From Haliotis rufescens (taxonomy: Eukaryota): DNA of 64,000 nucleotides. Location of the stretch: NCBI RefSeq assembly GCF_023055435.1, contig NW_025964013.1, positions 4,030,001-4,094,000 of the forward strand. Direction: 5' to 3'. Shown here one piece after another: positions 3,116 through 64,000 of this stretch. The notes below the pieces were generated by a model. That model worked only from the letters and a program-made list of their open reading frames with translations, ran no database searches and was not told the origin of the DNA. Made by a program: the position numbers and the translations under genes. Numbering within the stretch: position 1 is the stretch's first letter; the number at the start of each line of letters is the position of its first letter.

Positions 3116-3119
3116 AGAA

Positions 3120-13240: not shown

Positions 13241-15035
13241 ATGACGTATCTCGTGGTTGTTCTGCTGCTGTTGGCGTGTTCAGTCCCACTTTCCTCCTCG
13301 AGGCAGGTAGGTGATGATGACATCCAAGAGTTGTACGGAGTAGCCAGCAGCTATTCGCAGTGCTCCAACACCTACTGGAGAAGACTTCGATCTGCTAGTG
13401 GTATTGTTCTGGTTGTGAGAAGCGGATGCCTGAAGGATCAGAACACTTTCCGGGCATCACTGAAGACGATTCAATGTTCTGACATAACGGCTGCTGTTTC
13501 TAAGTTCTGTACTGGACGATTCACCAGGTATTGGTCTACAAAATTGGTATGTCGGTTTGCCAGAAAAGTCAATAAGCGCTGTGAGGCAAGCGATGACAGA
13601 AGCCCCTTGTGCAAACAGGCAATGTCTCGAATGCCTCAAAAATGGGCTAGTTTAACGTGTAAAGGATACGAAAGGTATTGCAAAAGCTCCAGTTACCTCC
13701 GCAGATACTACATTAGATTTATGTGTAAACTGGCTGAAAACTTCTATTCTAACTGCTGTCAAGTCGATCCAGTGACAGAGCCAATCTCAACAACACCTGC
13801 AACAACGGCAACAACCGACGTCCCTACAACTGAGCCGCCTACAACTGAGCCGACCACTACGATTACAACCGACGTCCCTACAACCGAGGTCCCAACAACT
13901 GAGCCGACCACTACGGTGACAACCGAAGTCTCTACAACCGAGTCGACCACAGTCCCAACGACCACAGTCCCAACGACCACAACAACTGAAACAACTCTCC
14001 CCGAAGTTGCGGACAAAACTTTCTGTATGTATTCTTGTATGTTTCCTATACTGACTGTACACATAGAGCTTTACAATGTTTATTCTTATGAATTCTTTGA
14101 AACGTGGGCATGTTTATGTTTGGTCAGTCGTCGATACGTTACGAAACAACATTAATAGCTTAAATTAAAAGTCCAGTTTCCATCCTTGCCGAATTGGAAT
14201 TTCGTGTCCCGATCATAGCGCCACCAGTGGCCGTTACGAGTTATGTCCTTTCTGTGTCCCTCCTATTGACAAATCAGATTCCACCTCTCCTTTCACTCAT
14301 TTTTTCAAACAGAATGGGGGCGTCAAGAACGTACGATCTGATCGATAACCAAGATCTTTATTGTACTAAAATGTGTCTCACCTCGCGAGGTACATCAAAT
14401 CACTTGGGCACCTTGATTTAATATATGGAAACATTTGAAAAACATCTGTCGACGCCCAGCTGACAGTACACATGTTCGGCAAATCCTGCAATCGCCCGAA
14501 ATCTGCACGGCAGTCGCCACGTTACCAATATCTATTTCGTTCCGCGATTTTGATTGGATTAAGCATAGACTCGTTCGTCAAGCCAACATGTAACTCCATA
14601 ATTTCCGACCAGTTCGGCAAGGGTGGAAACTGGACTTTCAAAGGCAGTTTACTATCTTGTCTTGTGAAGATGAGGCATTGTTCAAAAAGACAGTTCCTGT
14701 TCTTAAAACTATAGAATAAAGGACAGCTCATTTGGATTTGTTTAATGTACAGCGATCTGATATCATACTCATTTTCTATTTTATTCCACTTATCTAAAAT
14801 TGTAGACTGGTATTTATAGTTCCCATGAGACGTAACACTTTTTTACAGTTGGAGTGGTCATTGTTAACTTGTAATGACCTGTTTCTTTTGTTGATTCACA
14901 GTAACCGCTTGTACGCAACGATGTGTGCGCAACGACCTAGTGGGTTCACTGTGTGATACTGGAACGCTGGTCGAGGAATGTGACAATCTTCTTGTTGCAG
15001 AGTATGTGGGCTCGTATACCTGCTGTTCAGGTTAA
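13241..15035 (+). CDS. Secreted Cys-rich cationic/mucin-stalk protein, copy 1 (305 aa); CDS join(13241..14024,14902..15035)
   Basis: Signal peptide MTYLVVVLLLLACSVPLSSS. Donor TTCT|GTATGT and acceptor TTCACAG| are phase 1 and give ...ADKTF-LTACTQRCVRNDLVGSLCDTGTLVEECDNLLVAEYVGSYTCCSG*. Exon 2 is conserved across paralogs while the introns diverge. Confidence 0.9.
14165..14641. mobile_element. MITE in intron 1 of copy 1 with ~26-bp TIRs and TTAA-like ends (Kolobok-like)
   Basis: AAAGTCCAGTTTCCATCCTTGCCGAA (14168-14193) vs TTCGGCAAGGGTGGAAACTGGACTTT (14613-14638), 1 mismatch; absent from intron 1 of copies 2-5. Confidence 0.8.
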
Positions 15036-16420
15036 TACAGGTAAGCCTTGGATAAACTTTTCGTAAGGTTCACATAATTGGTGGCCATCATTCCTTCTTC
15101 AATCGGATGGAACACGTTTCTGATTCAAACCATTATCTAGAAATTCTTGTATCATTGTATCAAATCAAACATTCAGACGGCTGCAATAGTGTCATGCTAA
15201 ACACGAATTATAATTGTATCTTCATGTTATGGTTTTTTGAGCCCCTAATAAATTGTGTGATTTCGTGACTTGCAACAATCCTAATACACTAAAATTAAGT
15301 CTTAACTTTGAGAATATTTATTTCTGTTAGCACTTAGATGGGTCAAATGACTTTGTCTTGTTTATTTTATGTTGATAATGTCTCGCTGAGCGAGACGCGT
15401 CGATCAGCCGAAATCTTATTACCGTCACATGATTTCGAGCGTCTCCATCACAGTCAAGTTTAACATAGATCCATAACATCATCAGTTACATGGCATTACA
15501 GTCAGCAGGTTACCAACAACAGCCGATGCAAAATGCATAAGAACAAGTTTGATTAAAATGTGAATTTGTGAACAAGTAAGTTTTGAGGTATGTTTTCATT
15601 ACTTTTTGAATATCTTTCCTCGTGTAGCTTAATTCATAACATAACTTCAGCAACAAGAGGCAAACACATTGAAGAGTCAACCTTGATTACGATATTGAGC
15701 GCGAGGCTGCATACTAGTATTAAGGGCTCGAAAATATATTAAAATTAAGGGCTTGAACACTTGTGTCGTGGTGGCATGTATGGCTGTGTCAGTTAATTTA
15801 ACTGTTGATCCCTACGGGGAGTAGTTTTCGTTTCTAATTTATTTCATAAGTTCGCAAGCGAATGCAACGCACGGTTCAAATATTGCTGTCGTGGTTGGAG
15901 AGATAGAGCTGGATCGGTAACCATTCGAGTTTAATGTATCATTTGGGTAGTGCGTGAATACTGCTTATTTAACTCAATATACAGACTGAATAGGATTCGG
16001 TTAGTTTGAAAAGCGCAAACTGTTTTATTCTTTAAGTCTTTTGGGCAGATGATATATTGCTAAGTTGATAACTAGGGTAGATATTGACTCAAGGAGTTTT
16101 ACAAACAAAACTTTAAGTGTTGTGGCCGATTCACTGTGTGGCTATAACTAACATTAACAGTAAAATCAGCGGCTTCACAATCCGAAGGTGCAACGTTCGT
16201 AACCCACTTGAGAAAGATTCAACATTCTCATTATATTTATTTTTTTCCATTTCTGGAAAGATTCTGGGTTCCTTGTGCCTCTTCAAATATTTGTGTAGCA
16301 ATCTGTGACTCATCGAGAACGTCAATTATAGAAGTTGTTTATATATAATCTGTTTGTCGTCATCATTGCAGCACAACAGTGAGGCTAGTATTTATTATAA
16401 TTAAGTTTTCTATATTTCAG

Positions 16421-18949: not shown

Positions 18950-20510
18950 ACATGAAAAAGGACAGTCACCTCACGCGTTTCCTCATGCATTACGATAGTC
19001 ACCTCACCCGTTTCCTCATGCATTAAGAAAGCCACCTCACCCGTTTCATCATGCATTAAGATAGTCACCTCACCCGTTTCCTCATGCATTAAGAAAGCCA
19101 CCTCACCCGTTTCCTCATGCATTAGGAAACCACCTCACCCGTTTCCTAATGCATTACGACAGTCACCTTACCCGTTTCCTCATGCATTAAGATAGTCACC
19201 TCACCCGCTTCCTCATGCATAAGGATAGTCACCTTACCCGTTCCCTCATGCATTACGACAGTCACCTCACCCGTTTCCTCATGCATTAAGAAAGCCACCT
19301 TACCCGTTTCCTCATGCATTAAGATAGTCACCTCACCCGTTTCCTCATGCATTAAGATAGCCACCTCACCTGTTTCCTCATGCATTACGACAGTCACCTC
19401 ACCCGTTTCCTCATGCATTAAGAAAGCCACCTCACCCGTTCCCTCATGCATTAAGATAGTCACCTCACCCGTTTCCTCATGCATTAAGATAGTCACCTCA
19501 CCCGTTTCCTCATGCATTAAGATAGTCACCTCACCCGTTTCCTCATGCATTAAGATAGTCACCTCACCCGTTTCCTCATGCATTAAGATAGTCACCTCAC
19601 CCGTTTCCTCATGCATTAAGATAGTCACCTCACCCGTTTCTCATGCATTAAGACAGTCACCTTACCCGTTTCCTCATGCATTAAGAAAGTCACCTCACCC
19701 GTTTCCTCATGCATTACGACAGTCACCTTACCCGTTTCCTCATGCATTAAGAAAGTCACCTTACCCGTTTCCTCATGCATTAAGATAGCCACCTCACCCG
19801 TTTCCTCATGCATTAAGAAAGTCACCTTACCCGTTTCCTCATGCATTAAGATAGTCACCTCACCCGTTTCCTCATGCATTAAGAAAGTCACCTCACCCGT
19901 TTCTTCATGCATTAAGATAGGCACCTCACCCGTTTCTTCATGCATTAAGATAGCCACCTCACCCGTTTCCTCATGCATTACGACAGTAACCTCACCCGTT
20001 TCTCATGCATTAAGATAGTCACCTCACCCGTTTCCTCATGCATTAAGAAAGCCACCTCACCCGTTTCTTCATCCATTACGATATTCACCTTACCCGTTTC
20101 CTCATGCATTAAGATAGTCATCTCACCCGTTTCCTCATGCATTAAGATATTCACCTTACCCGTTTCCTCATGCATTAAGATAGTCATCTCACCCGTTTCC
20201 TCATGCATTAAGATAGACACCTTACCCGTTTCCTCATGCATTAAGATAGTCATCTCACCCGTTTCCTCATACATTAAGATAGACACCTTACCCGTTTCCG
20301 CATGCATTAAGAAAGACACCTCACCCGTTTCCTCATGCATTAAGATAGTCACCTCACCCGTTTCCTCATGCATTAAGATAGTCACCTCACCCGTTTCCTC
20401 ATGCATTAAGATAGTCACCTCACCCGTTTCCTCATGCATTAAGATAGTCACCTCACCCGTTTCCTCATGCATTAAGATAGTCACCTCCTCCTGCATTACG
20501 ACAGCCACCT
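18950..20510. repeat. 33-bp minisatellite (GCATTAAGATAGTCACCTCACCCGTTTCCTCAT)n, about 47 units
   Basis: Direct reading; 11-aa periodic spurious ORFs. Confidence 0.95.
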
Positions 20511-21164: not shown

Positions 21165-23240
21165 AGACAATATCCACTGTGATCTGCTGACTGCAGACAG
21201 ATGGGGCTAGGCCTGTGACTTACAGACAATATCCACTGTGGTCTGCTGACTGTAGACAGATGGGGCTAGGCCCGTGACTTACAGACAATATCAACTGTGG
21301 TCTGCTGACTGTAGACAGATGGGGCTAGGCCTGTGACTTACAGACAATATCCGCTGTGGTCTGCTGACTGTAGACAGATGGGGCTAGGCCTGTGACTTAC
21401 AGACAATATCCACTGTAGTCTGCTGTCTGTAGACAGATGGGGCTAGGCACGTGACTTACAGACAATATCCACAGTAGTCTGCTGTCTGTAGACAGATGGG
21501 GCTAGGCCTGTGACTTACAGACAATATCCACTGTAGTCTGCTGTCTGTAGACAGATGGGGCTAAGCCTGTGACTTACAGACAATATCCGCTGTGGTCTGC
21601 TGACTGTAGACTGATGGGGCTAGGCCTGTGACTTACAGACAATATCCACTGTAGTCTGCTGTCTGTAGACAGATGGGGCTAGGCCCGTGACTTACAGACA
21701 ATATCCACTGTGGTCTGCTGACTGTAGACAGATGGGGCTAGGCCCGTGACTTACAGACAATATCCGCTGTGGTCTGATGACTGTAGACTGATGGGGCTAG
21801 GCCTGTGACTTACAGACAATATCCACTGTGATCTGCTGACTGTAGACAGATGGGGCTAGGCCCGTGACTTACAGACAATATCCACAGTAGTCTGCTGACT
21901 GTAGACAGATGGGGCTAGGCCTGTGACTTACAGCCAATATCCACAGTAGTCTGCTGACTGTAGACAGATGGGGCTAGGCCTGTGACTTACAGACAATATC
22001 CACTGTGGTCTGATGACTGTAGACAGATGGGGCTAGGCCTGTGACTTACAGACAAATCCACTGTGGTCTGCTGACTGTAGACAGATGGGGCTAGGCCTGT
22101 GACTTACAGACAATATCCACTGTGATCTGCTGACTGTAGACAGATGGGGCTAGGCCCGTGACTTACAGACAATATCCACAGTAGTCTGCTGACTGTAGAC
22201 AGATGGGGCTAGGCCTGTGACTTACAGACAATATCCACTGTGATCTGCTGACTGTAGACAGATGGGGCTAGGCCCGTGACTTACAGACAATATCCACAGT
22301 AGTCTGCTGACTGTAGACAGATGGGGCTAGGCCTGTGACTTACAGACAATATCCACAGTAGTCTGCTGACTGTAGACAGATGGGACTAGGCCTGTGACTT
22401 ACAGACAATATCCACTGTGGTCTGATGACTGTAGACTGATGGGGCTAGGCCCGTGACTTACAGACAATATCCACAGTAGTCTGCTGACTGTAGACAGATG
22501 GGGCTAGGCCCGTGACTTACAGACAATATCCGCTGTGGTCGGCTGACTGTAGACTGATGGGGCTAGGCCTGTGACTTACAGACAATATCCACAGTAGTCT
22601 GCTGACTGTAGACAGATGGGGCTAGGCCTGTGACTTACAGACAATATCCACTGTGGTCTGATGACTGTAGACTGATCGGGCTAGGCCCGTGACTTACAGA
22701 CAATATCCACAGTAGTCTGCTGACTGCAGACAGATGGGGCTAGGCCTGTGACTTACAGACAATATCCACTGTGGTCTGCTGACTGTAGACAGATGGGGCT
22801 AGGCCCGTGACTTACAGACAATATCCACAGTAGTCTGCTGACTGTAGACAGATGGGGCTAGGCCTGTGACTTACAGACAATATCCACAGTAGTCTGCTGA
22901 CTGTAGACAGATGGGGCTAGGCCTGTGACTTACAGACAATATCCACAGTAGTCTGCTGACTGTAGACAGATTGGGCTAGGCCCGTGACTTACAGACAATA
23001 TCCACTGTGGTCTGCTGACTGTAGACAGATGGGGCTAGGCCCGTGACTTACAGACAATATCCACTGTGGTCTGCTGACTGTAGACTGATGGGGCTAGGCC
23101 CGTGACTTACAGACAATATCCACTGTGGTCTGCTGACTGTAGACTGATGGGGCTAGGCCCGTGACTTACAGACAATATCCACAGTAGTCTGCTGACTGTA
23201 GACAGATGGGGCTAGGCCCGTGACTTACAGACAATATCCA
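21165..23240. repeat. 59-bp minisatellite, about 35 units
   Basis: GACTTACAGACAATATCCACTGTGGTCTGCTGACTGTAGACAGATGGGGCTAGGCCTGT; period 59 (21217, 21276). Confidence 0.95.
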
Positions 23241-25662: not shown

Positions 25663-26579
25663 TAGCCGGAATCGATCGTTTAATCGACTCTGTTTGTGAC
25701 AGAGATTTCTTAGGAATATGGAAAGAGGTTTGTTGCTTTTATTTATCATTGTGCTGGTGCCACGTCCCCGCTTGATACTCACTTTTAATTAACATAAATA
25801 TTACATATAAATGTTGTAAGAGCCTCATAAGCCTTTTGGGCTGGGCCATGATTGTTTTATTGTTCTGCACTCTACTATGTACATATATTATACAGTAGGT
25901 CTATGTGTGTCCTTACTGTATCGTTTTATCAGAATGCGTATCAATAGCTGTAATATCCATGTGCGTGACAATTCAATGAAGTATTTCAATAACAAGAAGA
26001 TCTTTAAAGGTGACGGACAGACAGGTATATGTTTATCTTTTGTTGAAGTGTCACATCGCTATATTTGTTTAAGATAAACAGTGAACACGTTATAACAACT
26101 CACAAATAACACAGAGAGAGAGAGAGAATATTGTTTATTAAAGTGTCACATGTTATATACACTTCGTAATACGATATATACAAAACAGTAAAATATAACA
26201 TCCGGCCAAATATGACCTACGAGACACTATAAAACATATCAATCATAAAACTATTCAGTTGAAACAGAATAAAAAATACATACCTCGTGATGCAGGCGCG
26301 GAGCACGGCCGTGGGCGGTTTCAGCGAAGAGCGCACCAGTATGCCAGGATACAGGGCAACTGACTTCGAAAGTCCTTAGTTAAACAGTGCGCTCCCCCTT
26401 AACTCCCCCCACCGCGTTGCGCCNNNNNNNNNNNNNNNNNNNNNNNNNNNNNNNNNNNNNNNNNNNNNNNNNNNNNNNNNNNNNNNNNNNNNNNNNNNNN
26501 NNNNNNNNNNNNNNNNNNNNNNNNNNNNNNNNNNNNNNNNNNNNNNNNNNNNNNNNNNNNNNNNNNNNNNNNNNNNNNN

Positions 26580-28290
26580 GCCGGTCTCAACATGTAAAGG
26601 TAAAATACCACATCGAAAGGATGCTAAAAGTCTTCGATGATCTCTAAAACGTACATGACATAAATAAGGCTCAGCAGTAGGTGATGATTTGTACATTCTG
26701 TATGTGCGTAATTTATTGCCATTTGGATTATTCTTGTCATTCCATAGCGCAGTATACCACATATCACAATCTTCAGCAGTTAAGAAACACTTTACACGGT
26801 CAACACACTGTTTAATGCTGTATCCACAATAAGGTAAATTTGACAAATTATAGTGAGCTAAAATGTTTACGATTTTTTTATCCCAGGATTGTGATCGGAT
26901 TTTGGACCAATTATGAATGATAAGAGGGAGATGATGGGCCTGCATATTCTGAATTCTAAAATATAATCTAAAGCATTCAACGTGCTGTGACACTTTCACA
27001 GAACACCAGCCCATGTCCCCCCTCATAGCAGTAACTGGGGCATTTTTTCTTACGCCTAGAAACAAACGACAAGCCTTATTTTGAATTATTTCTACTTCCT
27101 TATACTTATTCAAACCCCAAATGCCAGCACCATAAAATAGAACAGGTTCTACAAGAGCTTTATAAAGCTTGTTAAATACTTCGTAAGACATGCCACCCGC
27201 GTGTTTAAACTTTGAATACAACGCAGAAAGAGCTCTGCTAGCCGATTTACACAGTACCTGGACTGTTTTGTGCATATCTAAATGCTCATTAAAAGTTAAA
27301 CCAAGATATTTGTAAGAGCTTTCATAATCAATAATAGATTTGCCGCATACAAATACTCGCTCAGATCTAGCCACAGCTTTGTTTCTGAAATGCATGATTT
27401 TGGTTTTGTCTGAATTAATATCCAAACGCCATTTTTGACACCATATATTTAAAACATTTAACATTTTCTGTAACGAGTCTTCGTCTTCAGCTAACAAGGC
27501 TATATCATCAGCATACAACAAAACTGATAACACAGAACTTTCAATAGGTATGCCACAGTTTAACTTATTCATGTCTAACACCAAATCATTAATATAAACG
27601 GAAAATAACGTTGGCGATAACTTGCATCCTTGTTTAACGCCCAAGGTAACATTAAAAGATTCAGTGATAAAACCATTGAGCTTAACTGCACACTTTACGT
27701 CCATATATAAGGCTTGTACAGCTTGTAGCATTTTACCATGAATACCAACAGACATAAGCTTGTACCAAAGGCAATTGCGATTAACCCTATCAAACGCCTT
27801 CTTAATATCAACAAAACAGACATACGTAGATCGTTTAGAGGCTTTACGGTTATTAACAATATTATAAAGTGCATATAAGTGATCAGTGCAGTTTCTCTTA
27901 GGTCTAAAACCATTTTGCTCTTCCACAAGAATATTATTTGACTCCAACCACTTCTGTATCCTACAGTTCAGTATACACGTGTAGACTTTACAGGGTATTG
28001 ATATGAGAGTAATGCCCCTGTAAGACAAAGGATCTGACGGGGTACTTTTGTCCTTAGGAATAGGAGTAATTAGTCCTGCTCCCCACTGAGACGGCGACAC
28101 TGAATGTTCAAAACAATACTTAATGATATGGTGAAGTAAGTTAATACAATGAGGATTTCGTAGTACTTCTACCGGTATACCGTCTACCCCAGGCGCTTTT
28201 CCTGTCTTCATCTGCATAACAGCAAGGTCAACTTCCTGGACTGAGACAGAGCGGTTCAAATCCGACAGATCATAATCTGCACACTCCACG
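26580..28290 (-). mobile_element. 5'-truncated non-LTR retrotransposon ORF2 (CR1/L2-group reverse transcriptase), uninterrupted up to the N gap
   Basis: GKAPGVDG, YRGITL, EQNGFR, FVDIKKAFD, GVKQGCKLSPTLF, LYADD, YKYLG, KLRTY, RCGILPLHVETG. A possible 3' tail (AATAAA..(TC)n on minus) lies at ~26113-26140. Confidence 0.95.
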
Positions 28291-46564: not shown

Positions 46565-46802
46565 TGACGTCAATACATGACTACACAAGGCTAAACGCTT
46601 TTCTCACCCCTACTGATCTACAGAAACTGACCATATGTGATAGTAAGGTAACCTAAGTTCGTGCCCAATTACTGCCCTACTGACACGTGATTGTTTACCA
46701 TCGCCTGTATCGACAGCTGCAATAAGACAGATCTATTGCAGGACAGGCCTATATAAGAAAGAGTTGACGGGATCACATCACCGCCTGTTCCTCGGATCCA
46801 AG
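46565..46802 (+). promoter_or_regulatory. Proximal promoter of copy 3
   Basis: TGACGTCA 46565-46572; dyad; TATATAAG 46750-46757. Confidence 0.7.
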
Positions 46803-48052: not shown

Positions 48053-51000
48053 TACAGGTAAGCCTTTCATAAATAAGTTGTAAGATTTACATAATTCGGA
48101 AGCCATCATTCCTTCGTAAATTGGATGGAACATGTTTCTGTTTCAAAACAGTATCTAGAAATACTTGTATCAATGTATCAGCTCAAATATTCAGACCACT
48201 CAAATTGTGTGAAACAAGGAATTATGATGTTTCCTCATATTATGGGTTTTCGAGACCCTAATAAGTATTTCTGATTACGTGACTTGTAACGATCCGAATA
48301 CATTAAAATTAAACCTTACCTTTGACGACATGGATAGGTCAAATGACCATGTCTTGGTAATTTTATAGTGATATTGCCTCGCTCAGCGATATGAGTCGAT
48401 CAGGTGAGATCATGTTACCGTCACATGATTTCGAGCCCTTTCATCACAGTCAAGCTAAAAATAGATGCACAACATTATCAGTCTCGTGGTACATACGATT
48501 GTTTTGATGCATATATTATCATCAGAACAAGTTTGATGATTTCATTTCTGACTTGTTTCATCAATTCATAAGCGAAACTGTTGGTATAGTGGACATAACT
48601 ACCATTGTATAGCTATAACTATCATTAACAGTAAAATTAGCTGCTTCTCAATCCGAAGGTTTAATTTGGGAACAATTTCACATTCTCTGGATGTTTACGT
48701 TTTTCACATTTCTGGAAACAAATTTTCTTTGTTCTTTGTGGCTATTCAAATATATGTGCAGCAATATACGTCTTGCCCAGAATGTCTATTATAGAAGTAA
48801 TATATACAAATCTGTTTGTCGTCATCATTGCAGCACAACCCTGAAGCTAGTATAGAATATAATTCAATTTTCTATATTTCAGTGGATGTCTCCACATTTC
48901 CACTGGATGCTTCACTCCATCTTTTTTCCGTGATAATAAACTAATTTCGCAGCAATGTGTTTTCTGTCTTCACTTCATGTTGAATAATGTCAAGCTGAAC
49001 AATCAGCAAACCAATATGGCCTAATGCTTGGAGTACCCAATTTCACATATCACCGAGAACATTTAGTTATGGGAGGTGATGACGTTTCATTAATCAGCAT
49101 TGAATAGGTGATTTAATGTCATCATTATCAGATGGTGGCCTATTCATGAATATGCCTTCGCTAAAAGATATCAAAGCGCAATGTTAGATCTTTTGAAAAA
49201 TTGTCTAACAAATCATTGGTATAAATCATCAACAAATATTCAACCAAGCGGCATGAAGTCTGCACTCTTACAAATCAATCTGATCTCTAATGCACCTTAA
49301 GGTACCGACAAAGCCCTTTGTCCTGCCTTTACAAAGATACATTTATGTGACAATTGTCCGATACCCAACACCTATTACACGAAAGGTTAGGCCAGTTAAG
49401 ACTGGGTTTAAATCCGCAGACATACACCTTTTCGGCAGGAATATGGTTCACTTTACATCAATCAGAACAAATGTTCTAACAAACTCATACTTGAATCAAA
49501 TACTATTGCTCCTTTTCTCGACGGAAAACGGCCCAGCCAGTATAGGAGACATTATTTGTCAACATTTTACTTTAGCCTGAAAAGATTTGTATGGTCGGTT
49601 TAAAATAACAAGAACGCAAAATGATGGTTTCTGTAGAAGCTTAACTAGATATGATTTAGCAATAAGACAATTCGAGAATAGCCGAAGCCAAGATATGGCA
49701 ACCACACTTTTATGACACTCTTCACGGTGATATGTGCCAAATTGATCCGGGGTGTCATTAAAACAAGAGTAACGCCATTATCAAAGCGAGGTAACAGCTT
49801 CACAGGTGTATGACCAACAGCTAATTGTATTAATGGGTGACAATATAAAGAATCAAATAAACCCAATTTAAACTGACAAAGATCACTGATTACAAATATC
49901 ACAGCACTCACACAAGCAGCTTAGCTAAGCCACTATATTACAGTAATAAATTGCGAGTAGCCAAAACAACTCTTTCTAAAATTCACAAAAATACAAGACA
50001 CTTGAAATAAAGTAGAAAAATATGAGAAGGTTGGTTATCCATGGAGTACTAGAAAAACGGAGTATTGAAAACCCTAGCTAATACGTTCAGCTCAATACAA
50101 TGAAGGGAAATTAATACTAAATAAAAGGTGCCCCATATTCTCTTACTAACGCAACCAGAATGACCATCCAGTAACAAATCGACCCGTAAACGAACTAACA
50201 AGGTCTGGGGGTGAACACACAAGATTGTCATAGAGTTTCTATACCAGCTCACAGGCCTCGTAGGGGATAATCTCTCCTGATCAGCCAGGGAAAATGATAG
50301 TCTGGGACACCTAGCCACGATTAGCAAACTGATTACTTCATACATATGGAAGATATACCTGTCAAAATAAAGCGCCGAACACAGGCTGTCCAACTATATT
50401 ACGAATTTACGTGTACTGGTATGGAACATGAAATTATACGCTTGTACGAGATTGAAACATATATATGTGTATACATGTAAAAGGGTATCATGACGGCATG
50501 TGTGTGCACAAGTATTCATCATGAAAGGATACACGTGAACATGTATGCATCAAAACGTCATACATGTGTACATGTATCTATCATGACTGTATGTGTGTCT
50601 ACAAGTATGCATCATGACTGTATTTGTACGTACATGTACATATGATGACGTTATACATGTATATATGTGTATATGTACATGTATGTGTCAGAACGGTTTA
50701 CACGTGTACATGTATGTATGAAGACGATATCTATGTGCAGACGTATATATTATGAAGGTATACCTGTGAAATCGATAGTGTGAACATTTGCCGGAACTTC
50801 TTTCCGGTGTTTTCCCGAACTCTCGATCGGTGTTTACAACTAAATCGTTTTGTTATATATAAAATCCCTGCATTTATCAGCAACAAAATTTAGTATTTTG
50901 CTTGGTCTTGTAACGTTTTATCTGACTTTATAATATATCAACGCTTTGGTTCTGGTGTTTGATGTCGTCTGCTACATGAAACAAAATGGATTATCCTTAC

Positions 51001-52436: not shown

Positions 52437-53686
52437 ATGACGTATCTCGTGGTTGTTCTGCTGCTGTTGGCGTGCTCAGTCCCACTTTCCTCCTCGAGGC
52501 AGGTAGGTGATGATGACATCCAAGAGTTGTACGGAGTAGCCAGCAGCTATTCGGAGTGTTCCAACACCTACTGGAGAAGACTGTGGTATGCCAGAGGCAT
52601 TGTTCTGGTTGTCAGAAGCGGATGCAGGAAGGATCAGAGAACTTTCCGGGCGGCCCTGAAGAAGATTCAATGCTCTGACATAACGGCTGCCGTCTCTAAG
52701 TTCTGTGGTAGCAGATACACCAGATTTTGGGCTACAAATTTGGTGTGTCGGTTTGCCAGAAAAGTCAATGAGCGCTGTGAGTCAAGCGATGATAGGAGCC
52801 CCTTGTGCAAACAGGCAATGTCTCGAATGCCTCGAAGATGGGCTAGTTTAACGTGTAAAGGATACGACAGGTATTGCAAAAGCTCCAGTTACCTCCGCAG
52901 ATACTACATTAGATTTATGTGTAAACTGACTGAAAACTTCTATTCTAACTGCTGTCAAGTCGATCCAGTGACAGAGCCAATCACAACACCTGAACCAACG
53001 ACAACGACAACAGAGGTACCTACGACCGAGCCGCCAACAAAACCACCGACCACTGCGGCTACAACCGACGCCCCTACAACCGAGCTGCCTACAACCCCAC
53101 CGACCACTGAGGCTACAACCAACGCCCCTACAACCGAGCCGCCTACAATCCCACCGACCACTCCGTCTGGACCAACTCTGCCAGAAGTCGCGGACAAAAC
53201 TTTCTGTGTGTATTTTTGGTCTGTTTGCTACACAGACTTTACATTTAGAGCTTTACAATGTGTAATGGCATGAATTCTTTAAAACTTTGGCGTGTTTATG
53301 CTTGGTCAGTCGTCGATAACGTTATGTAACAATATTAATAGCTTAGGCATTTAAAAAATATATATATAAAATGACCGATCATTTGGATTACTTCGATGTA
53401 GAGGGATCTGACATCATTCTCATTTTCTGTTTTATTCCACTTATCAAGCATTGTAGTCTGGTATTTATAGTTCCTTTGAGGGGTTGCAACTTTTTACAAT
53501 GAGAGTGATCATTGTTAAACTGTGATGGCCAATTTCTCATATTGATTCACAGTAACCGCATGTACACAACGATGTGTCCGCAACGACCTAGTGGATTCAC
53601 TGTGTGGTACTGGGACGCTGGTCGAGGAATGTGACAATCTTCAAGTTCCAGAGTTTGTGGGATCGTATACCTGCTGTTCAGGTTAA
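52437..53686 (+). CDS. Secreted Cys-rich/mucin-stalk protein, copy 4 (300 aa); join(52437..53205,53553..53686); UTR exon 3 from 54517, AATAAA 54569
   Basis: Intact frame and splice sites. Confidence 0.9.
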
Positions 53687-56199
53687 TAAAGGTAAGCCTT
53701 TCATAAATAGGTTGTAATATTTACATAATTCGGAAGCCATCATTCCTTCGTAAGTTGGATGGAACATGTTACTGTTTCAAAACAGTATCTAGAAATACTT
53801 GTATCAATGCATCAGCTCAAATATTCAGACCACTCAAATTGTGTGAAACAAGGAATTATGATGTTTCCTCATAATATGGGTTTTCGAGACCCTAATAAGT
53901 ATTTCTGATTACGTGACTTGTAACGATCCGAATACATTAAAATTAAACCTTACCTTTGACGACATGGATAGGTCAAATGACCATGTCTTGGTAATTTTAT
54001 AGTGATATTGCCTCGCTCAGCGATATGAGTCGATCAGGAGAGATCATGTTACCGTCACATGATTTCGAGCCCTTTCATCACAGTCAAGCTAAAAATAGAT
54101 GCACAACATTATCAGTCTCGTGGTACATACGATTGTTTTGATGCATATATTATCATCAGAACAAGTTTGATGATTTCATTTCTGACTTGTTTCATCAATT
54201 CATATGCGAAACTGTTGGTATAGTGGACATAACAACCATTGTATAGCTATAACTATCATTAACAGTAAAATTAGCTGCTTCTCAATCCGAAGGTTTAATT
54301 TGGGAACAATTTCACATTCTCTGGATGTTTACGTTTTTCACATTTCTGGAAACAAATTTTCTTTGTTCTTTGTGGCTATTCAAATATATGTGCAGCAATA
54401 TACGTCTTGCCCAGAATGTCTATTATAGAAGTAATATATACAAATCTGTTTGTCGTCATCATTGCAGCACAACCCTGAAGCTAGTATAGAATATAATTCA
54501 ATTTTCTATATTTCAGTGGATGTCTCCACATTTCCACTGGATGCTTCACTCCATCTTTTTTCCGTGATAATAAACTAATTTCGCAGCAATGTGTTTTCTG
54601 TCTTCACTTCATGTTGAATAATGTCAAGCTGAACAATCAGCAAACCAATATGGCCTAATGCTTGGAGTACCCAATTTCACATATCACCGAGAACATTTAG
54701 TTATGGGAGGTGATGACGTTTCATTAATCAGCATTGAATAGGTGATTTAATGTCATCATTATCAGATGGTGGCCTATTCATGAATATGCCTTCGCTAAAA
54801 GATATCAAAGCGCAATGTTAGATCTTTTGAAAAATTGTCTAACAAATCATTGGTATAAATCATCAACAAATATTCAACCAAGCGGCATGAAGTCTGCACT
54901 CTTACAAATCAATCTGATCTCTAATGCACCTTAAGGTACCGACAAAGCCCTTTGTCCTGCCTTTACAAAGATACATTTATGTGACAATTGTCCGATACCC
55001 AACACCTATTACACGAAAGGTTAGGCCAGTTAAGACTGGGTTTAAATCCGCAGACATACACCTTTTCGGCAGGAATATGGTTCACTTTACATCAATCAGA
55101 ACAAATGTTCTAACAAACTCATACTTGAATCAAATACTATTGCTCCTTTTCTCGACGGAAAACGGCCCAGCCAGTATAGGAGACATTATTTGTCAACATT
55201 TTACTTTAGCCTGAAAAGATTTGTATGGTCGGTTTAAAATAACAAGAACGCAAAATGATGGTTTCTGTAGAAGCTTAACTAGATATGATTTAGCAATAAG
55301 ACAATTCGAGAATAGCCGAAGCCAAGATATGGCAACCACACTTGTATGACACTCTTCACGGTGATATGTGCCAAATTGATCCGGGGTGTCATTAAAACAA
55401 GAGTAACGCCATTATCAAAGCGAGGTAACAGCTTCACAGGTGTATGACCAACAGCTAATTGTATTAATGGGTGACAATATAAAGAATCAAATAAACCCAA
55501 TTTAAACTGACAAAGATCACTGATTACAAATATCACAGCACTCACACAAGCAGCTTAGCTAAGCCACTATATTACAGTAATAAATTGCGAGTAGCCAAAA
55601 CAACTCTTTCTAAAATTCACAAAAATACAAGACACTTGAAATAAAGTAGAAAAATATGAGAAGGTTGGTTATCCATGGAGTACTAGAAAAACGGAGTATT
55701 GAAAACCCTAGCTAATACGTTCAGCTCAATACAATGAAGGGAAATTAATACTAAATAAAAGGTGCCCTATATTCTCTTACTAACGCAACCAGAATGACCA
55801 TCCAGTAACAAATCGACCCGTAAACGAACTAACAAGGTCTGGGGGTGAACACACAAGATTGTCATAGAGTTTCTATACCAGCTCACAGGCCTCGTAGGGG
55901 ATAATCTCTCCTGATCAGCCAGGGAAAATGATAGTCTGGGACACCTAGCCACAATTACCAAACTGATTACTTCATACATATGGAAGATAAACCTGTCAAA
56001 ATAAAGCGCCGAACACAGGCTGTCCAACTGTCACGAAAGATTTACAACAAGCTATGTGCAAGTATTGAGGGGGCAAAAACGATTATAAATACGTGATGAT
56101 ATCTGTGAGTACATGGATAACCCTAATGAGCGAAAATCAAAGTCACCAAACAAATTCAATACATGATAAAGGCCGCACACATACATGTGATAACATACA

Positions 56200-56904
56200 T
56201 CCAGTCAAAACATGGTAAGAGTGAGCCATTAAATTACAAGAGAAATGAAGAGAATGAAATAGTCAGTTGTTGGTTTTTTGTTAAAAAAAGGATGTTGTCA
56301 GTGTTGCCGTGTGAGGTCGGGCGTTGTCTCGTTTGAAAATGATTTAAGCTTACTGCACAATTGTTGTGGTCATACTCTGTGACCTTGCCATCAGTCGACG
56401 ATGTAGGTCTGTCCAAAAGACATCTCGAACTGAGCGAATACCTTCAATGAACAATTCGTCACTGTCTTGGCGGATCTCCTACGCAATCCTGGTATTGCCG
56501 TAGTTGTGTCTGTGGTGGTTCTGTCACGTAAATGACGTAGCCTTATGAATCTGTCCTGTATTCTGGTAGTGATACGTGGTCGGCCGGATCTGGGAAGTTC
56601 ATGTGTGTCTGATAACGGTTCCGCAGTCTTGTAATGGTGCTTGGTGCTACGTGAGAACACCTGGCTACAGCTGAAGATGATTCTCCTGTTTGAAGCCGGT
56701 TCGTAGCATGATTTTGCTGTTCACTTGCTCAGAGAATGTGATGGCATGCAAATGCAAACCAAACGTTTTTGTACAGCCAAACAAGTGATGTTGTAAGTGC
56801 TGTTGGTGAATTTCGGCGCCAGGGTCTCATTATTAATTCTGTATGGATGTCGGCAACACATTTAAGATTTTACTACTTTTGCGTTTCTTTTTTGTCACAG
56901 TATA
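56200..56904 (-). mobile_element. Truncated degenerate Tc1-like element (5' TIR plus N-terminal transposase)
   Basis: Reverse complement TATACTGTGACAAAAAAGAAACGC; ATGCCA at 56747; LPRSGRPRITTRIQDRFIRLRHLRDR. Confidence 0.85.
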
Positions 56905-57218
56905 GATACAAATTTGATTCATAACACGTTTAGATCATGAACGAGGACTCTCAAGCCGTTTGGATTTCTAACACAAATCTAAACATACTAAAATAATCAT
57001 AATTTGTTGGGATGAATGAGATAAAATGAGAGCAGGTGTTAAAAAAATGAACTTTCTCGCATTTTGCAATATGATACTTATCTTAAATTAGAATTGGTTG
57101 AGGACATGGATATGTTGTAACTTTTATTTAAGAAATAAACGACGAGTTTGAGCTGTTTATCATACAATAACCATGAGCGGCACATATATTTTATATGTAT
57201 GTGTCACAACGGTATATA

Positions 57219-58645
57219 TATACTGAACCAAATTAAAAACCTCACAATCCTAAAATTTTATCATTTTGACCAGTTATCACTGTGGGCCCTTATTGTGTAT
57301 TTAAACAGTAATAGCCACGTATTGTCTTCAGATAACACCCGTTTTTGTGCAGATGAATCAATCAAAATCATGTGAACAGCACTTTTGTGGCAAAAGTGGC
57401 TTTTCACGTGCAACTGGTCACGTGGCCATAATACCGCACGTGTTTTCAGCCAGACTTGTTAGTGGTCATTAACAAAAAAAAGAAAAACACAAGAAAACAA
57501 AAGTCTTTACGGCCATTTGTCATGCCAAGCCTTTCAGATGTGCAACGTGAACGTGTCATCTGCATGTTGCAGACGGGAACGTCCGTAGCTGAAGTCGCAA
57601 GGACGATGGGTTGTAGCCGACGGACTGTTTATGATTTACAGACGCGTCTACAGCAAACGGGTACCACCGCTGATCGCCCTCGGCCAGGTCGACCACGTGT
57701 GACGGCACATGCAGAGGATCGTCAGATTGTCTTACGTCACCTCCGGAACCGATATTTGACGGCGACATCAACCAGAAATGAACTGTTTAGGGGTAGACTG
57801 AGTGCGCAAACTGTTCGAAACCGTCTGAGAACTGCTCACCTTCAAGCACCACGGCCATACTGCGGGCCGATTCTGACTCAATTACACAGACGTCAACGTC
57901 AGTTGTTGGCACAGCGACACTTATGATGGATTCAGTGGAATTGGAATCAAGTCGTCTTCAGTGATGAATCCCGATTTAATCTTCGATTTGCTGATGGTAG
58001 GACGAGGGCGTGGAGGCGCCGTCATGAACGTTACGCCCAGTGTTGTGTACAGGAAGTTGACAGATTTCGAGGCGGAAGTGTCATGGTGTGGGGTGATTTC
58101 TGTGACAGTGCACGTTCCAGGCTTATTGTCATCCGTGGCAACCTCAACGCTGCTGCTTACCGCGACCAGGTACTGGCACTAGAACTCCTGCCTTTTATGG
58201 CAGCACATGGACCCGGTTTGATCTTCCAACACGACAATGCCAATGCCAGACCCCACACAACAATTTTGACAAGGAATTTCCTTCAGAATGTGGGAGTCAA
58301 CGTCATGGACTGGCCGTCAAGATCTCCAGACCACAATCCCATCGAACACGTCTGGGATGCTCTTGACAGAAGTCTGCGCACTCTCCAGAAACAACCCCAG
58401 AATTTGCAAGATCTTGGCATCATTTTGCAGCAACAATGGCGCCGTTTTCCCAATCATGTGTTCACAAGCATCACAAGGTCCATGCGGAGGCGTTGTGTGG
58501 CAGTTGTCAACGCACATGGTGGCCAAACACGCTACTGAACTTGTGTGCCATCAGATTCTCGTGCTTGGGACTTATGATTTAAACTGTTGATGTTATTACC
58601 GAATACCGTAGGTGCTTGGAACAAAATATGGTTACCAACGTTAAT
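57219..58645 (+). mobile_element. Tc1-like transposon; 5' TIR present, 3' TIR not seen
   Basis: TATACTGAACCAAATT terminus; contains a near-intact transposase. Confidence 0.85.
57522..58538 (+). pseudogene. Tc1 transposase with a single in-frame TGA (57924-57926)
   Basis: HTH region, GRPR, FSDESRF, GGSVMVWG, FQHDNA, WPSRSPDHNPIEHVW and GGQTRY all in one frame. Confidence 0.93.
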
Positions 58646-60192
58646 ACATACGTTATACATGTATATATGTGTATATGTATGTGTCAGAACGGTTTACACG
58701 TGTACATGTATGTATGAAGACGATATCTATGTGCAGACGTATATATTATGAAGGTATACCTGTGAAATCGATAGTGTGAACATTTGCCGGAACTTCTTTC
58801 CGGTGTTTTCCCGAACTCTCGATCGGTGTTTACAACTAAATCGTTTTTCTATCTATAAAATCCCTGCATTTATCAGCAACAAAATTTAGTATTTTGCTTG
58901 GTCTTGTAACGTTTTATCTGACTTTATAATATATCTACGCTTTGGTTCTGGTGTTTGATGTCGTCTGCTACATGAAACAAAATGGATTATCCTTACAATG
59001 ATTTGGATAGGGAATGAGTATCTCTCAATTGTATTTTTAGCAATATTGACTTTGGTGCCTTGTCGGAAATGACAGTAATCTAGCACTTAGCGGCTTGCGA
59101 ATGATAAATAATAAAAGGAACCTAGTTTTCAAATAAATAAGACATAAACAGGTAAGGAAAGCGACTTTAATTATAAAAAAAACAACTTGTCAACCTATGT
59201 TATCGATCGGTCATCGGAGACGAGAAAAATATCCGTAGACTAGATTACTTTTCCGGTTTCTGTGTTGGCCGACCTTTTCCGTGCATTCTAGGCCGAGAAG
59301 CGGCGGCACATGAAGAAGGACGGGACAAAGATATGAAGCTAGCATCAGGTCATACATTAGGTCTTTCTCATGATACATGTGTTCTGATTCAATAAGACAG
59401 ATACCTCACCTGTCTCATTATACAAAAGCTACGTATACCCAACTTCTCTGTGTTCCGTTGCAATAAGACTCTCACCTTACGTGTGCCCTGATACAATAAG
59501 ACAGGCACCTGATGTGTCTTCTGACAAAATACAACTGTTAATCGTCTCACAAGGATAGATGTAGCTTTAAAGATTACTGTGAAACTTGGTGTCCGTAAAC
59601 AGATGTGCTTATTTGTGATTGAGTTACATTATAAGGACAGGTGTTTTGTGATCAGAAGCCGTGTCCACAAACCACCCTGTTCATTCAGGAAACTGAAATC
59701 ACCTCACCTTTGTCTTGATGAAACATAACAAGTACCTTACCTGTGTCCTAATTCAATGTATCACATCTTACAAGAAGAGATATCAATATGAATATTGTCA
59801 ACATTTACTTTGAACCTCCATCACCGAATAAATAGTTTTCAGTTTCTTTCCAGTCGCTTTCGTATATGTTTCCATTTCCAGGTGATCACATCTGAAGTTA
59901 GAAGTCCACATCTCTTGTCAAGACATAGATAAAATTCAGGGTAATTGAGGCTTTACGATAACGATCAATTATTTTACAAGTGGTCTATTGTAACCATGCT
60001 CGTGCGTGACTTCAACTATGGCCGGAACAGATATATATAAAGTGGTTCGGTCAGCGCCTATAGAAAAATATAATTATGATTCAGGAAACCTGTTTTAACT
60101 ATGGCAGGCAAAGTCAATTTCATACATTTCTCACACTTTTGTAACAAAGCAAAGGTTCCCCGACACTCTATCCCAAATAAGTAGTTAATCAC

Positions 60193-60430
60193 TGACGTCA
60201 ATACATGACTACACAAGGCTAAACGCTTTTCTCACCCCTACTGATCTACAGAAACTGACCATATGTGATAGTAAGGTAACCTAAGTTCGTGCCCAATTAC
60301 TGCCCTACTGACACGTGATTGTTTACCATCGCCTGTATTGACAGCTGCAATAAGACAGATCTATTGCAGGACAGGCCTATATTAGAAAGAGTTGACGGGA
60401 TCACATCACCGCCTGTTCCTCGGATCCAAG
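60193..60430 (+). promoter_or_regulatory. Proximal promoter of copy 5 (variant TATA)
   Basis: TGACGTCA 60193-60200; dyad; TATATTAG 60378-60385. Confidence 0.65.
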
Positions 60431-61680
60431 ATGACGTATCTCGTGGTTGTTCTGCTGCTGTTGGCGTGTTCAGTCCCACTTTCCTCCTCGAGGCAGGTAG
60501 GTGATGATGACATCCAAGAGTTGTACGGAGTAGCCAGCAGCTATTCGGAGTGTTCCAACACCTACTGGAGAAGACAGTGGTATGCCAGAGGCATTGTTCT
60601 GGTTGTCAGAAGCGGATGCAGGAAGGATCAGAGAACTTTCCGGGCGGCCCTGAAGAAGATTCAATGCTCTGACATAACAGCTGCCGTCTCTAAGTTCTGT
60701 AGTAGCAGATACACCAGATTTTGGGCTACAAATTTGGTGTGTCGGTTTGCCAGAAAAGTCAATGAGCGCTGTGAGTCAAGCGATGATAGGAGCCCCTTGT
60801 GCAAACAGGCAATGTCTCGAATGCCTCGAAGATGGGCTAGTTTAACGTGTAAAGGATACGACAGGTATTGCAAAAGCTCCAGTTACCTCCGCAGATACTA
60901 CATTAGATTTATGTGTAAACTGACTGAAAACTTCTATTCTAACTGCTGTCAAGTCGATCCAGTGACAGAGCCAATGACAACACCTGAACCAACGACAACG
61001 ACAACAGAGGTACCTACGACCGAGCCGCCAACAACACCACCGACCACTGCGGCTACAACCGACGCCCCTACAACCGAGCTGCCTACAACCCCACCGACCA
61101 CTGAGGCTACAACCAACGCCCCTACAACCGAGCCGCCTACAATCCCACCGACCACTCCGTCTGGACCAACTCTGCCAGAAGTCGCGGACAAAACTTTCTG
61201 TGTGTATTTTTGGTCTGTTTGCTACACAGTTTTTACATTTAGAGCTTTACAATGTGTAATGGCATGAATTCTTTAAAACTTTGGCGTGTTTATGCTTGGT
61301 CAGTCGTCGATTACGTTATGTAACAATATTAATAGCTTAGGCATTTAAAAAATATATATATAAAATGACCGATCATTTGGATTACTTCGATGTAGAGGGA
61401 TCTGACATCATTCTCATTTTCTGTTTTATTCCACTTATCAAGCATTGTAGTCTGGTATTTATAGTTCCTTTGAGGGGTTGCAACTTTTTACAATGAGAGT
61501 GATCATTGTTAAACTGTGATGGCCAATTTCTCATATTGATTCACAGTAACCGCATGTACACAACGATGTGTCCGCAACGACCTAGTGGATTCACTGTGTG
61601 GTACTGGGACGCTGGTCGAGGAATGTGACAATCTTCAAGTTCCAGAGTTTGTGGGATCGTATACCTGCTGTTCAGGTTAA
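60431..61680 (+). CDS. Secreted Cys-rich/mucin-stalk protein, copy 5 (300 aa); join(60431..61199,61547..61680); UTR exon 3 from 62511, AATAAA 62563
   Basis: Intact frame and splice sites. Confidence 0.9.
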
Positions 61681-64000
61681 TACAGGTAAGCCTTTCATAA
61701 ATAGGTTGTAATATTTACATAATTTGGAAGCCATCATTCCTTCGCAAGTTGGATGGAACATGTTTCTGTTTCAAAACAGTATCTAGAAATACTTGTATCA
61801 ATGCATCAGCTCAAATATTCAGACCACTCAAATTGTGTGAAACAAGGAATTATGATGTTTCCTCATAATATGGGTTTTCGAGACCCTAATAAGTATTTCT
61901 GATTACGTGACTTGTAACGATCCGAATACATTAAAATTAAACCTTACCTTTGACGACATGGATAGGTCAAATGACCATGTCTTGGTAATTTTATAGTGAT
62001 ATTGCCTCGCTCAGCGATATGAGTCGATCAGGTGAGATCATGTTACCGTCACATGATTTCGAGCCCTTTCATCACAGTCAAGCTAAAAATAGATGCACAA
62101 CATTATCAGTCTCGTGGTACATACGATTGTTTTGATGCATATATTATCATCAGAACAAGTTTGATGATTTCATTTCTGACTTGTTTCATCAATTCATAAG
62201 CGAAACTGTTGGTATAGTGGACATAACTACCATTGTATAGCTATAACTATCATTAACAGTAAAATTAGCTGCTTCTCAATCCGAAGGTTTAATTTGGGAA
62301 CAATTTCACATTCTCTGGATGTTTACGTTTTTCACATTTCTGGAAACAAATTTTCTTTGTTCTTTGTGGCTATTCAAATATATGTGCAGCAATATACGTC
62401 TTGCCCAGAATGTCTATTATAGAAGTAATATATACAAATCTGTTTGTCGTCATCATTGCAGCACAACCCTGAAGCTAGTATAGAATATAATTCAATTTTT
62501 TATATTTCAGTGGATGTCTCCACATTTCCACTGGATGCTTCACTCCATCTTTTTTCCGTGATAATAAACTAATTTCGCAGCAATGTGTTTTCTGTCTTCA
62601 CTTCATGTTGAATAATGTCAAGCTGAACAATCAGCAAACCAATATGGCCTAATGCTTGGAGTACCCAATTTCACATATCACCGAGAACATTTAGTTATGG
62701 GAGGTGATGACGTTTCATTAATCAGCATTGAATAGGTGATTTAATGTCATCATTATCAGATGGTGGCCTATTCATGAATATGCCTTCGCTAAAAGAAATC
62801 AAAGCGCAATGTTAGATCTTTTGAAAAATTGTCTAACAAATCATTGGTATAAATCATCAACAAATATTCAACCAAGCTGCATGAAGTCTGCACTCTTACA
62901 AATCAATCTGATCTCTAATGCACCTTAACGTACCGACAAAGCCCTTTGTCCTGCCTTTACAAAGATACATTTATGTGACAATTGTCCGATACCCAACACC
63001 TATTACACGAAAGGTTTGGCCAGTTAAGACTGGGTTTAAATCCGCAGACATACACCTTTTCGGCAGGAATATGGTTCACTTTACATCAATCAGAACAAAT
63101 GTTCTAACAAACTCATACTTGAATCAAATACTATTGCTCCTTTTCTCGACGGAAAACGGCCCAGCCAGTATAGGAGACATTATTTGTCAACATTTTACTT
63201 TAGCCTGAAAAGATTTGTATGGTCGGTTTAAAATAACAAGAACGCAAAATGATGGTTTCTGTAGAAGCTTAACTAGATATGATTTAGCAATAAGACAATT
63301 CGAGAATAGCCGAAGCCAAGATATGGCAACCACACTTGTATGACACTCTTCACGGTGATATGTGCCAAATTGATCCGGGGTGTCATTAAAACAAGAGTAA
63401 CGCCATTATCAAAGCGAGGTAACAGCTTCACAGGTGTATGACCAACAGCTAATTGTATTAATGGGTGACAATATAAAGAATCAAATAAACCCAATTTAAA
63501 CTGACAAAGATCACTGATTACAAATATCACAGCACCCACACAAGCAGCTTAGCTAAGCCACTATATTTCAGTAATAAATTGCGAGTAGCCAAAACAACTC
63601 TTTCTAAAATTCACAAAAATACAAGACACTTGAAATAAAGTAGAAAAATATGAGAAGGTTGGTTATCCATGGAGTACTAGAAAAACGGAGTATTGAAAAC
63701 CCTAGCTAATACGTTCAGCTCAATACAATGAGAGGAAATTAATACTAAATAAAAGGTGCCCTATATTCTCTTACTAACGCAACCAGAATGACCATCCAGT
63801 AACAAATCGACCCGTAAACGAACTAACAAGGTCTGGGGGTGAACACACAAGATTGTCATAGAGTTTCTATACCAGCTCACAGGCCTCGTAGGGGATAATC
63901 TCTCCTGATCAGCCAGGGAAAATGATAGTCTGGGACACCTAGCCACAATTACCAAACTGATTACTTCATACATATGGAAGATAAACCTGTCAAAATAAAG

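Follow-up and report, generated by a model that had tools for sequence, protein, structure and literature searches.

What does a gene family do when its copies are intact, its transcripts are spliced and no characterised relative can be found? This question is raised by a stretch of 64,000 nucleotides (nt) from the abalone Haliotis rufescens (NCBI RefSeq assembly GCF_023055435.1, contig NW_025964013.1, positions 4,030,001 to 4,094,000 of the forward strand), referred to here as the window, in which five intact paralogs encode a protein with a cationic 12-cysteine head, a Thr/Pro-rich stalk and an acidic six-cysteine tail. These genes are a real, expressed orphan family, for which a function can only be proposed. 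What is new, as judged from the sequence, is that the tail exon occurs at a minimum of 20 loci with three types of head, and that one of the two additional groups of genes carries the promoter and the signal peptide of the array as well.

Array, gene models and transcripts

The preliminary description of the window had announced a five-gene family. Five intact copies are indeed what the window holds, but they are only the first five of ten in an array that extends, with one additional fragment, over ~106 kilobases (kb; C235:4043241-4150105, C235 being the contig of the window), and at least nine more genes bear the tail behind other heads. The extent of the array was obtained from a six-frame, genome-wide search with the head, in which matches fell between C235:4043313 and 4149397. 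All ten copies display the same exon structure and the same number of cysteines, and eight distinct proteins are encoded. Copies 2-5 are arranged in a 5.6-kb tandem unit at 92-99.4% identity (92-99.6% for the units of the array overall), while copy 1, which represents an older paralog type, has 87% nt identity to them. Between copies 6 and 7, outside the window, lies a pseudogene fragment (C235:4103941-4104749) in which the head is reduced to residues 105-154 and contains one TGA stop, with an intact tail exon behind it.

The recent tandem amplification proposed earlier is borne out by these identities and by a transposon. A Tc1/mariner-type insert sits in the spacer of the copy-4 unit (52437-60430; 7,994 base pairs (bp) from the copy-4 ATG to the copy-5 ATG), and this same unit recurs at 99.6% identity as 60431-68424, running beyond the window, so that at least one duplication is later than the landing of the transposon. 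An artefact in which haplotype copies were mis-joined in tandem is unlikely: the assembly has no gaps within 41-74 kb, the units differ by 0.4-8%, and H. cracherodii possesses at least three copies.

The protein had also been called unrecognised. This is correct for its function and fold by Pfam, phmmer, PDB sequence and word searches, but the gene models are already public as RefSeq predictions, all of them entered as "uncharacterized protein" and none with a name, domain, fold or function. The spliced products of copies 2 to 5 are letter-for-letter H. rufescens RefSeq proteins (accessions in Table 1), and nine 300-amino-acid (aa) H. rufescens RefSeq proteins map one-to-one on copies 2-10. 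Models of these genes are present in RefSeq for H. rufescens, H. cracherodii, H. asinina and H. rubra (XP_048236549, XP_071103257, XP_067687649 and XP_046560361, in that order); those of H. rufescens are identical and the others share 61-99% identity, with the same exon join, 12+6 cysteines and architecture, the H. rubra model lacking the second half of the head.

Transcript-like contigs from four public runs, which represent four studies and four species labels, were aligned to positions 46300-49000. In all four, exons 1 and 2 of copy 3 are covered and the intron between them is skipped exactly at its GT..AG borders, and the spliced junction predicted earlier (47571/47919) is thereby found in four runs from four studies. 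Three of the four (X1, X4 and X5) additionally skip 48058-48882, an intron of the 3' untranslated region (UTR), and in run X1 a poly(A) stretch, then sequencing adaptor, follows the AATAAA signal. At the 5' end, the adaptor abuts position 46792 in the same run, about 40 nt past the conserved TATATAAG box, and the 5'UTR is short. Spliced contigs and a poly(A) end together indicate a polyadenylated mRNA of three exons, the third of which is non-coding. The two-exon coding model of the preliminary description is exactly that of NCBI, whereas the 3'UTR intron, exon 3 and the poly(A) end at ~48955 had not been foreseen. Copy 1 is transcribed too, as a spliced contig of lower depth with its stalk and tail variants occurs in X1. 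In all, 14 runs from 7 studies yielded transcript-like contigs of the family.

The splice sites are preserved in five of the five window copies: exon 1 ends at a phase-1 GT donor after ...AAAACTTTCT, and the acceptor of exon 2 reads CACAG/TAACCGC. In copy 3 the stop codon lies 5 nt upstream of the exon 2 donor. The copy-1 intron (14025-14901) measures 877 nt, as compared with 347 nt, because of an insert of ~480 bp. This insert (14163-14640) has inverted end repeats of ~29 nt (AAGTCCAGTTTCCA.CCTTGCCGAA...) and looks like a non-autonomous DNA transposon of the miniature inverted-repeat type.

Table 1. Features of the array, the encoded protein, the related subfamilies and the mobile elements. 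Plain positions are those of the window; exon 1 begins at the ATG and ends at the donor; CDS, coding sequence; ORF, open reading frame; pI, isoelectric point.
Feature	Position	Strand	Details
TATA box, copy 1	13188-13195	+	TATATAAG; 53 nt upstream of ATG
Copy 1 exon 1 CDS	13241-14024	+	Signal peptide, acidic DDDIQE, 12-Cys head, Thr/Pro stalk, phase-1 donor
Copy 1 exon 2	14902-15040	+	6-Cys tail; stop 15033-15035; donor CAG/GTAAGC
TATA boxes, copies 2, 3, 4	41162, 46750, 52384	+	TATATAAG; from sequence
Copy 2 exon 1 CDS	41215-41983	+	Product identical to XP_048236543
Copy 2 exon 2	42333-42471	+	Tail; stop 42464-42466
Copy 3 exon 1 CDS	46803-47571	+	Signal peptide 46803-46862, head ~46863-47327, stalk 47328-47570; contigs of 4 runs; product identical to XP_048236549
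Copy 3 intron 1	47572-47918	+	347 nt, GT..AG, phase 1; junction in runs X1, X4, X5, X10
Copy 3 exon 2	47919-48057	+	44-aa 6-Cys tail, first codon split by intron; stop 48050-48052
Copy 3 exon 3	48883-48955	+	3'UTR only; AATAAA ~48926; poly(A) and adaptor after 48952-48955; X1, X4, X5
Copy 4 exon 1 CDS	52437-53205	+	Product identical to XP_046349073
Copy 4 exon 2	53553-53691	+	Tail; stop 53684-53686; last bases AAG vs CAG (53689-53691)
TATA box, copy 5	60378-60385	+	Variant TATATTAG in place of TATATAAG; from sequence
Copy 5 exon 1 CDS	60431-61199	+	Product identical to XP_046342865
Copy 5 exon 2	61547-61685	+	Tail; stop 61678-61680; exon 3 from 62511
Signal peptide	residues 1-20
Acidic stretch	residues 21-30		Net -3
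Head	residues 41-173		29 K/R, 8-9 D/E, net +20/+21, pI ~10 (9.9), 19-21 aromatics, 12 Cys
Stalk	residues 176-256		32 S/T, 21 P, net -10
Tail	residues 257-300		6 Cys, net -4
Subfamily B, four copies	C235:5477861-5572198	-	1.4-1.5 Mb from the array, opposite strand, same contig
Subfamily C, five genes	C334:51248905-54377236		Tail exon alone in common, 72-73%
Tc1/mariner-type transposon insert	56030-58649	+	HTH_Tnp_Tc3_2 and DDE_3; two ORF pieces, 57456-57926 and 58083-58538
LINE-type reverse-transcriptase ORF	26376-28505	-	PF00078, E 2.6e-39; 3' part cut by gap 26424-26579

Two orphan domains and a shared tail exon

The product has 305 aa in copy 1 and 300 aa in copies 2-5, with 19 cysteines, one of them in the signal peptide, 12 in the head and six in the tail, and without any histidine in the mature protein. 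The parts listed in the preliminary description (signal peptide, DDDIQE segment, 12-cysteine head, PTTE stalk and 44-aa tail exon) were recovered in all five copies. Its manual count for the head of copy 3, about 29 K/R against 8 D/E, agrees with the composition count, and the secreted, charge-polarised design that it proposed is reflected in the net charges of head, stalk and tail (Table 1). The cysteines of the head are separated by fixed distances of 21, 15, 10, 13, 9, 9, 15, 6, 14, 9 and 0 residues, and those of the tail follow the pattern C-x3-C-x9-C-x8-C-x13-CC. In the DNA of the stalk, a 54-nt repeat (18 aa, PTTE-type) is present in 2.7 copies at 92%. The family can be defined by a signal peptide, the 12 spaced cysteines, a Thr/Pro stalk and the sequence ...KTF, followed after a phase-1 intron by a T-x-C-T-Q-R-C-V-R...Y-T-C-C-x-G tail, a combination found in the ten array copies and in the proteins of H. 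cracherodii and H. asinina.

Within the head, a spacing of 15, 10, 13, 9 may be set beside one of 15, 6, 14, 9 and hints at an internal duplication, the local alignment score being matched by 5-7% of shuffles. In the H. rubra model (XP_046560361/60) the second half of the head is absent, and the sequence passes from just past the seventh cysteine straight to the stalk; this shortening may be a genuine deletion, placed where the putative internal repeat has its boundary, or else an error of the gene model.

No relative of known function was retrieved by any of the searches carried out. At E<=10, neither exon 1 nor exon 2, nor copy 1, nor the complete RefSeq protein drew any Pfam family, and the same holds for subfamily B and the head of subfamily C. 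A word-indexed search of 5.8 billion proteins with the whole protein and the head yielded solely H. rufescens, H. cracherodii, H. asinina and H. rubra entries, all unnamed, the same type of search with the tail stayed within Haliotis as well, and an exhaustive phmmer search of 1.84 billion cluster representatives with the head gave two matches, both from Haliotis. Only chance rows (E>=0.4) were obtained among PDB sequences, and the ESM Atlas offered no usable match for head or tail. No full-length match to a characterised family, named in the preliminary description as one refuting outcome, was found. Head and tail both appear as orphan domains within reach of these tools, and the family appears restricted to Haliotis as far as the searches reach.

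Several known folds were considered and rejected. Egg lysin or sp18 membership (Pfam Egg_lysin) was dismissed with no Pfam match and chance rows only among PDB sequences. Secreted phospholipase A2 and i-type lysozyme, which are basic proteins of ~130 aa with ~12-14 cysteines, likewise gave no Pfam match, and the catalytic histidine required of the phospholipase is missing from the histidine-free mature protein. The AlphaFold2 model of the full-length protein, built from a 12-sequence alignment, has an all-helical head, at a mean predicted local distance difference test (pLDDT) of 45 that permits no fold comparison; its Foldseek rows, generic helical proteins at E>=0.8 and template-modelling score <0.25, were disregarded for this reason.

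For the tail, modelled at pLDDT 70, Foldseek gave no matches. In a VIA-wide structure search its best rows were the beta-defensin-like peptides AvBD11 and DLP-1, but their Z of 2.0-2.5 is at noise level and was rejected as evidence. The tail does resemble beta-defensins and the C-terminal domain of big defensins in its ~40 residues, its six cysteines ending in CC and its own exon behind a phase-1 intron. Unlike them, it is acidic rather than cationic, and the spacing of beta-defensin cysteines differs from the 3, 9, 8, 13, 0 of the tail.

This likeness bears on a rival explanation, according to which the product is an antimicrobial or immune effector of mucosa or hemolymph, whose +20 head attacks or agglutinates microbes while stalk and tail hold the protein in mucus. 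The idea draws on a head that is strongly cationic, rich in aromatics, probably stabilised by cysteines and placed behind a short acidic segment, on the polycationic repeat carried by a sister subfamily, and on the weak defensin-like rows and terminal CC of the tail. It is considered unlikely: besides the acidic charge, the deviating spacing and the noise-level Z of the tail, no known antimicrobial family was matched in Pfam, phmmer or PDB sequences, and the paralogs are near-identical with pN/pS (the ratio of nonsynonymous to synonymous proportions) <1, unlike most expanded families of immune effectors.

The main novelty emerged from a genome search with the 43-aa tail, whose minimum of 20 loci comprises 11 in the array, 4 in what is here called subfamily B and 5 in subfamily C. 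Across the three groups, 22 of the 43 columns of the tail alignment are invariant. The genes of subfamily B have the same signal peptide as those of the array, but the head is cut down to an 18-residue remnant of its end (…FMC.LA..YYS.YCQV…), after which come a polycationic (KSRNP/KSRKP)n repeat, a long (PPTTAPPTPP)n stalk, the same …VADKTF junction as in the array and the tail. At the DNA level, array and subfamily B can be aligned at 76-82% over the core promoter, 5'UTR and signal peptide (46697-46862), over exon 2 and its 3' flank (47899-48225), and over the poly(A) region, whereas no DNA alignment was obtained for the middle region. In one subfamily B copy (L023) the repeat block is much longer and the usual start is apparently missing.

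In subfamily C, the tail exon is preceded by Thr-rich exons repeated in tandem and by a first exon that is Cys-rich, acidic and unlike that of the array. The one gene of this group that was inspected (L032) has its first exon at 4540-4899 and three tandem 2.36-kb units, each with one Thr-rich exon.

Selection and the possible function of the product

The reading favoured here, though tentatively and at somewhat less than even confidence, is that of a Haliotis-restricted, tandemly amplified three-exon family encoding a secreted, probably heavily O-glycosylated, mucin-like protein that serves as a bulk component of mucus, glue or matrix. Production in quantity as such an extracellular component would explain the gene dosage. 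The tail, as it is common to at least two other head types, would supply a shared job, which may be disulfide-stabilised assembly, cross-linking or packaging in granules. With its glycans, the stalk would serve as a hydrated spacer. Polyanions would be bound by the +20 head with its aromatics, or in subfamily B by the polycationic repeat, and candidate partners are glycans with sulfate or carboxyl groups, surfaces, or the acidic stalks and tails of adjacent molecules. Four rival explanations, the antimicrobial one among them, are ranked lower.

The pattern of substitution suggests a constrained product amplified for dosage rather than a diversifying protein of recognition or fertilisation. Between copy 1 and copy 3, at a synonymous divergence (dS) of 0.25, the ratio of nonsynonymous to synonymous rates (dN/dS) amounts to 0.27 in the head and 0.31 in the tail, both under purifying selection, and to 0.54 in the stalk; intron and upstream flank have diverged more than the exons. 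Variation across copies 2-10 is confined to 30 codons (pN/pS 0.53), two pairs of copies encode the same protein, and the young copies are ~1% apart. In H. asinina, all 12+6 cysteines are retained at 61-73% identity. In the protein tree, copy 1 pairs with the H. cracherodii protein P0002 (support 100/99), so that the two paralog types are older than the separation of these species. The three type-II proteins of H. cracherodii stand apart from the nine of H. rufescens with weak support (92/93), a topology that fits species-wise amplification or gene conversion.

These values bear directly on the explanation of the product as a reproductive protein of egg coat, jelly or sperm granule that makes use of charge-based packing or binding. 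Lysin and sp18, abundant and strongly basic helical proteins of ~135 aa, are well known from abalone gametes, as is packaging based on charge, and the head resembles such proteins in size, charge and aromatic content. Lysin is not known to be rich in cysteines, unlike the head, and no Pfam match was obtained, hence none to the lysin family. Abalone fertilisation proteins typically evolve under positive selection, from which a dN/dS of 0.27-0.36 is remote, and the spread of the contigs over seven studies would be broad for a gene of the gonad only. This explanation is regarded as the least probable of all.

Two further explanations are improbable to the same degree. The first is a binder of algal polyanions (alginate, fucoidan) or phlorotannins in digestive fluid, a non-catalytic module carried by a Pro/Thr linker as in carbohydrate-active proteins. 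In its favour are the abalone diet of polyanion-rich brown algae, a head with cationic and aromatic character and the seeming abundance of the transcripts, and Pro/Thr linkers that join a compact binding domain to a second module are typical of glycan-degrading systems; yet no similarity to carbohydrate-binding or peritrophin-type modules (Pfam, phmmer, PDB sequences) and no catalytic partner domain were found. The second is a shell-matrix or biomineralisation protein of the mantle. Molluscan mantle secretomes commonly contain repetitive, tandemly duplicated proteins that are confined to one lineage and have basic domains with cysteines, and the orthologue set is limited to Haliotis. Against this, Pfam, which includes abalone shell protein families, gave no match, a literature search for Haliotis shell-matrix proteins of like composition found nothing, and the sequence has no acidic Asp-rich or Gly/Ala/Gln-rich blocks that interact with mineral.

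As for the mucus, glue or matrix component, its working mode would be like that of the Drosophila glue proteins Sgs3/7/8, as analogues and not homologues. In the Drosophila proteins the two terminal parts are common to the family, the Thr-rich repeats vary, the genes form a cluster whose copies turn over, cross-linking has been proposed for the cysteines, and a phase-1 intron interrupts the signal peptide (PMC6352337). The abalone proteins are comparably secreted, their paralogs are clustered with copy turnover, Thr/Pro-rich, probably glycosylated repeats lie between conserved ends (a signal/N-terminal part and a Cys-rich C-terminal part of ~50 aa), and members differ in the internal block. 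However, no sequence similarity exists (phmmer with the head and word search with the tail gave Haliotis only), the phylum is a different one, the abalone signal peptide is uninterrupted in exon 1 with the phase-1 intron located between stalk and tail, and the 133-aa, 12-cysteine cationic head has no counterpart. Membership of the Sgs3/7/8 family was thus rejected on sequence similarity and intron position, and the repeats and clustering are shared as an analogy only. The H. cracherodii orthologue of subfamily B carries the automatic NCBI name "salivary glue protein Sgs-3-like". A likeness to secreted, gel-forming mucins is found in the Cys-rich domain on each side of a Pro/Thr/Ser region for O-glycosylation and in the probable disulfide-based assembly, but VWD, C8, TIL, CTCK, SEA and trefoil domains are absent (Pfam, E<=10) and the protein has just 300 aa, with a stalk of only ~80 aa.

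A bolder version, rather unlikely and placed a little behind the antimicrobial explanation, would regard the whole as a modular cassette system, evolved in abalones, in which promoter, signal peptide and the phase-1, six-cysteine tail exon stay constant around exchangeable cargo, which would be a 12-cysteine cationic helical domain of new fold, the KSRNP polycation or a Cys-rich head of another kind. As block polyampholytes, the products would self-assemble, positive head to negative stalk and tail, into a coacervate-like mucus or underwater adhesive.

Several points weigh against the mucus, glue or matrix component and should be considered together. The head of subfamily C is acidic, so that a cationic business end is not general among the tail-bearing genes. 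The O-glycosylation of the stalk and the pairing of the 18 mature cysteines in nine disulfides are suggested by composition, and the helical head is a secondary-structure prediction only. Transcripts are not rare, with word depths in the thousands in runs X1 and X10, but contig word depth is a poor measure of expression and cannot rank genes. In the literature searched, no paper was found that names these genes or loci.

If the favoured reading is true, the family would be a major genus-specific secretory product of abalones, animals that are commercially important and partly endangered, and would provide a handle on their mucus, adhesion or mucosal biology as well as a natural model of charge-block glycoproteins for biomaterials. 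If the cassette system is true, molluscs would have yielded a class of biomaterial protein not known before, and its two disulfide-rich folds would be new as well. The family offers two domains without known relative in a clear modular gene design, and the array is a clean case of ongoing tandem amplification, in which a transposon-marked unit was re-duplicated and the copy sets look species-wise. In one respect the import is smaller than had been hoped in the preliminary description, as the models were already in RefSeq and lineage-restricted arrays of secreted Cys-rich or mucin-like proteins are common in molluscan genomes.

Gaps, mobile elements and satellites of the window

The assembly of the window contains two gaps (runs of N), at 26424-26579 and 29004-29338, both inside a 26-kb spacer of repeats and transposons that reaches from copy 1 (ending at ~16500) to copy 2 (promoter at ~41130). 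As the exons and introns of all copies lie clear of both gaps, the gene models are unaffected, and only the distance between copies 1 and 2 is uncertain. The first gap cuts the reverse-transcriptase ORF of the long interspersed nuclear element (LINE) type listed in Table 1, and the second lies just past it. A C-terminal transposase fragment, similar to that of the Tc1/mariner insert, is located at 1395-1751.

Dense mini- and microsatellite arrays occupy 2566-5408, 7324-8204 and 11095-12498 upstream of copy 1, and 18964-20487, 21165-23240, 32593-33791 and 35979-39391 between copies 1 and 2. Among them is a 2.3-kb array of the 8-bp unit GACGTGTG with strong GC skew, other units having 25, 33, 54, 59 and 97 bp, and long spurious ORFs result from these satellites.

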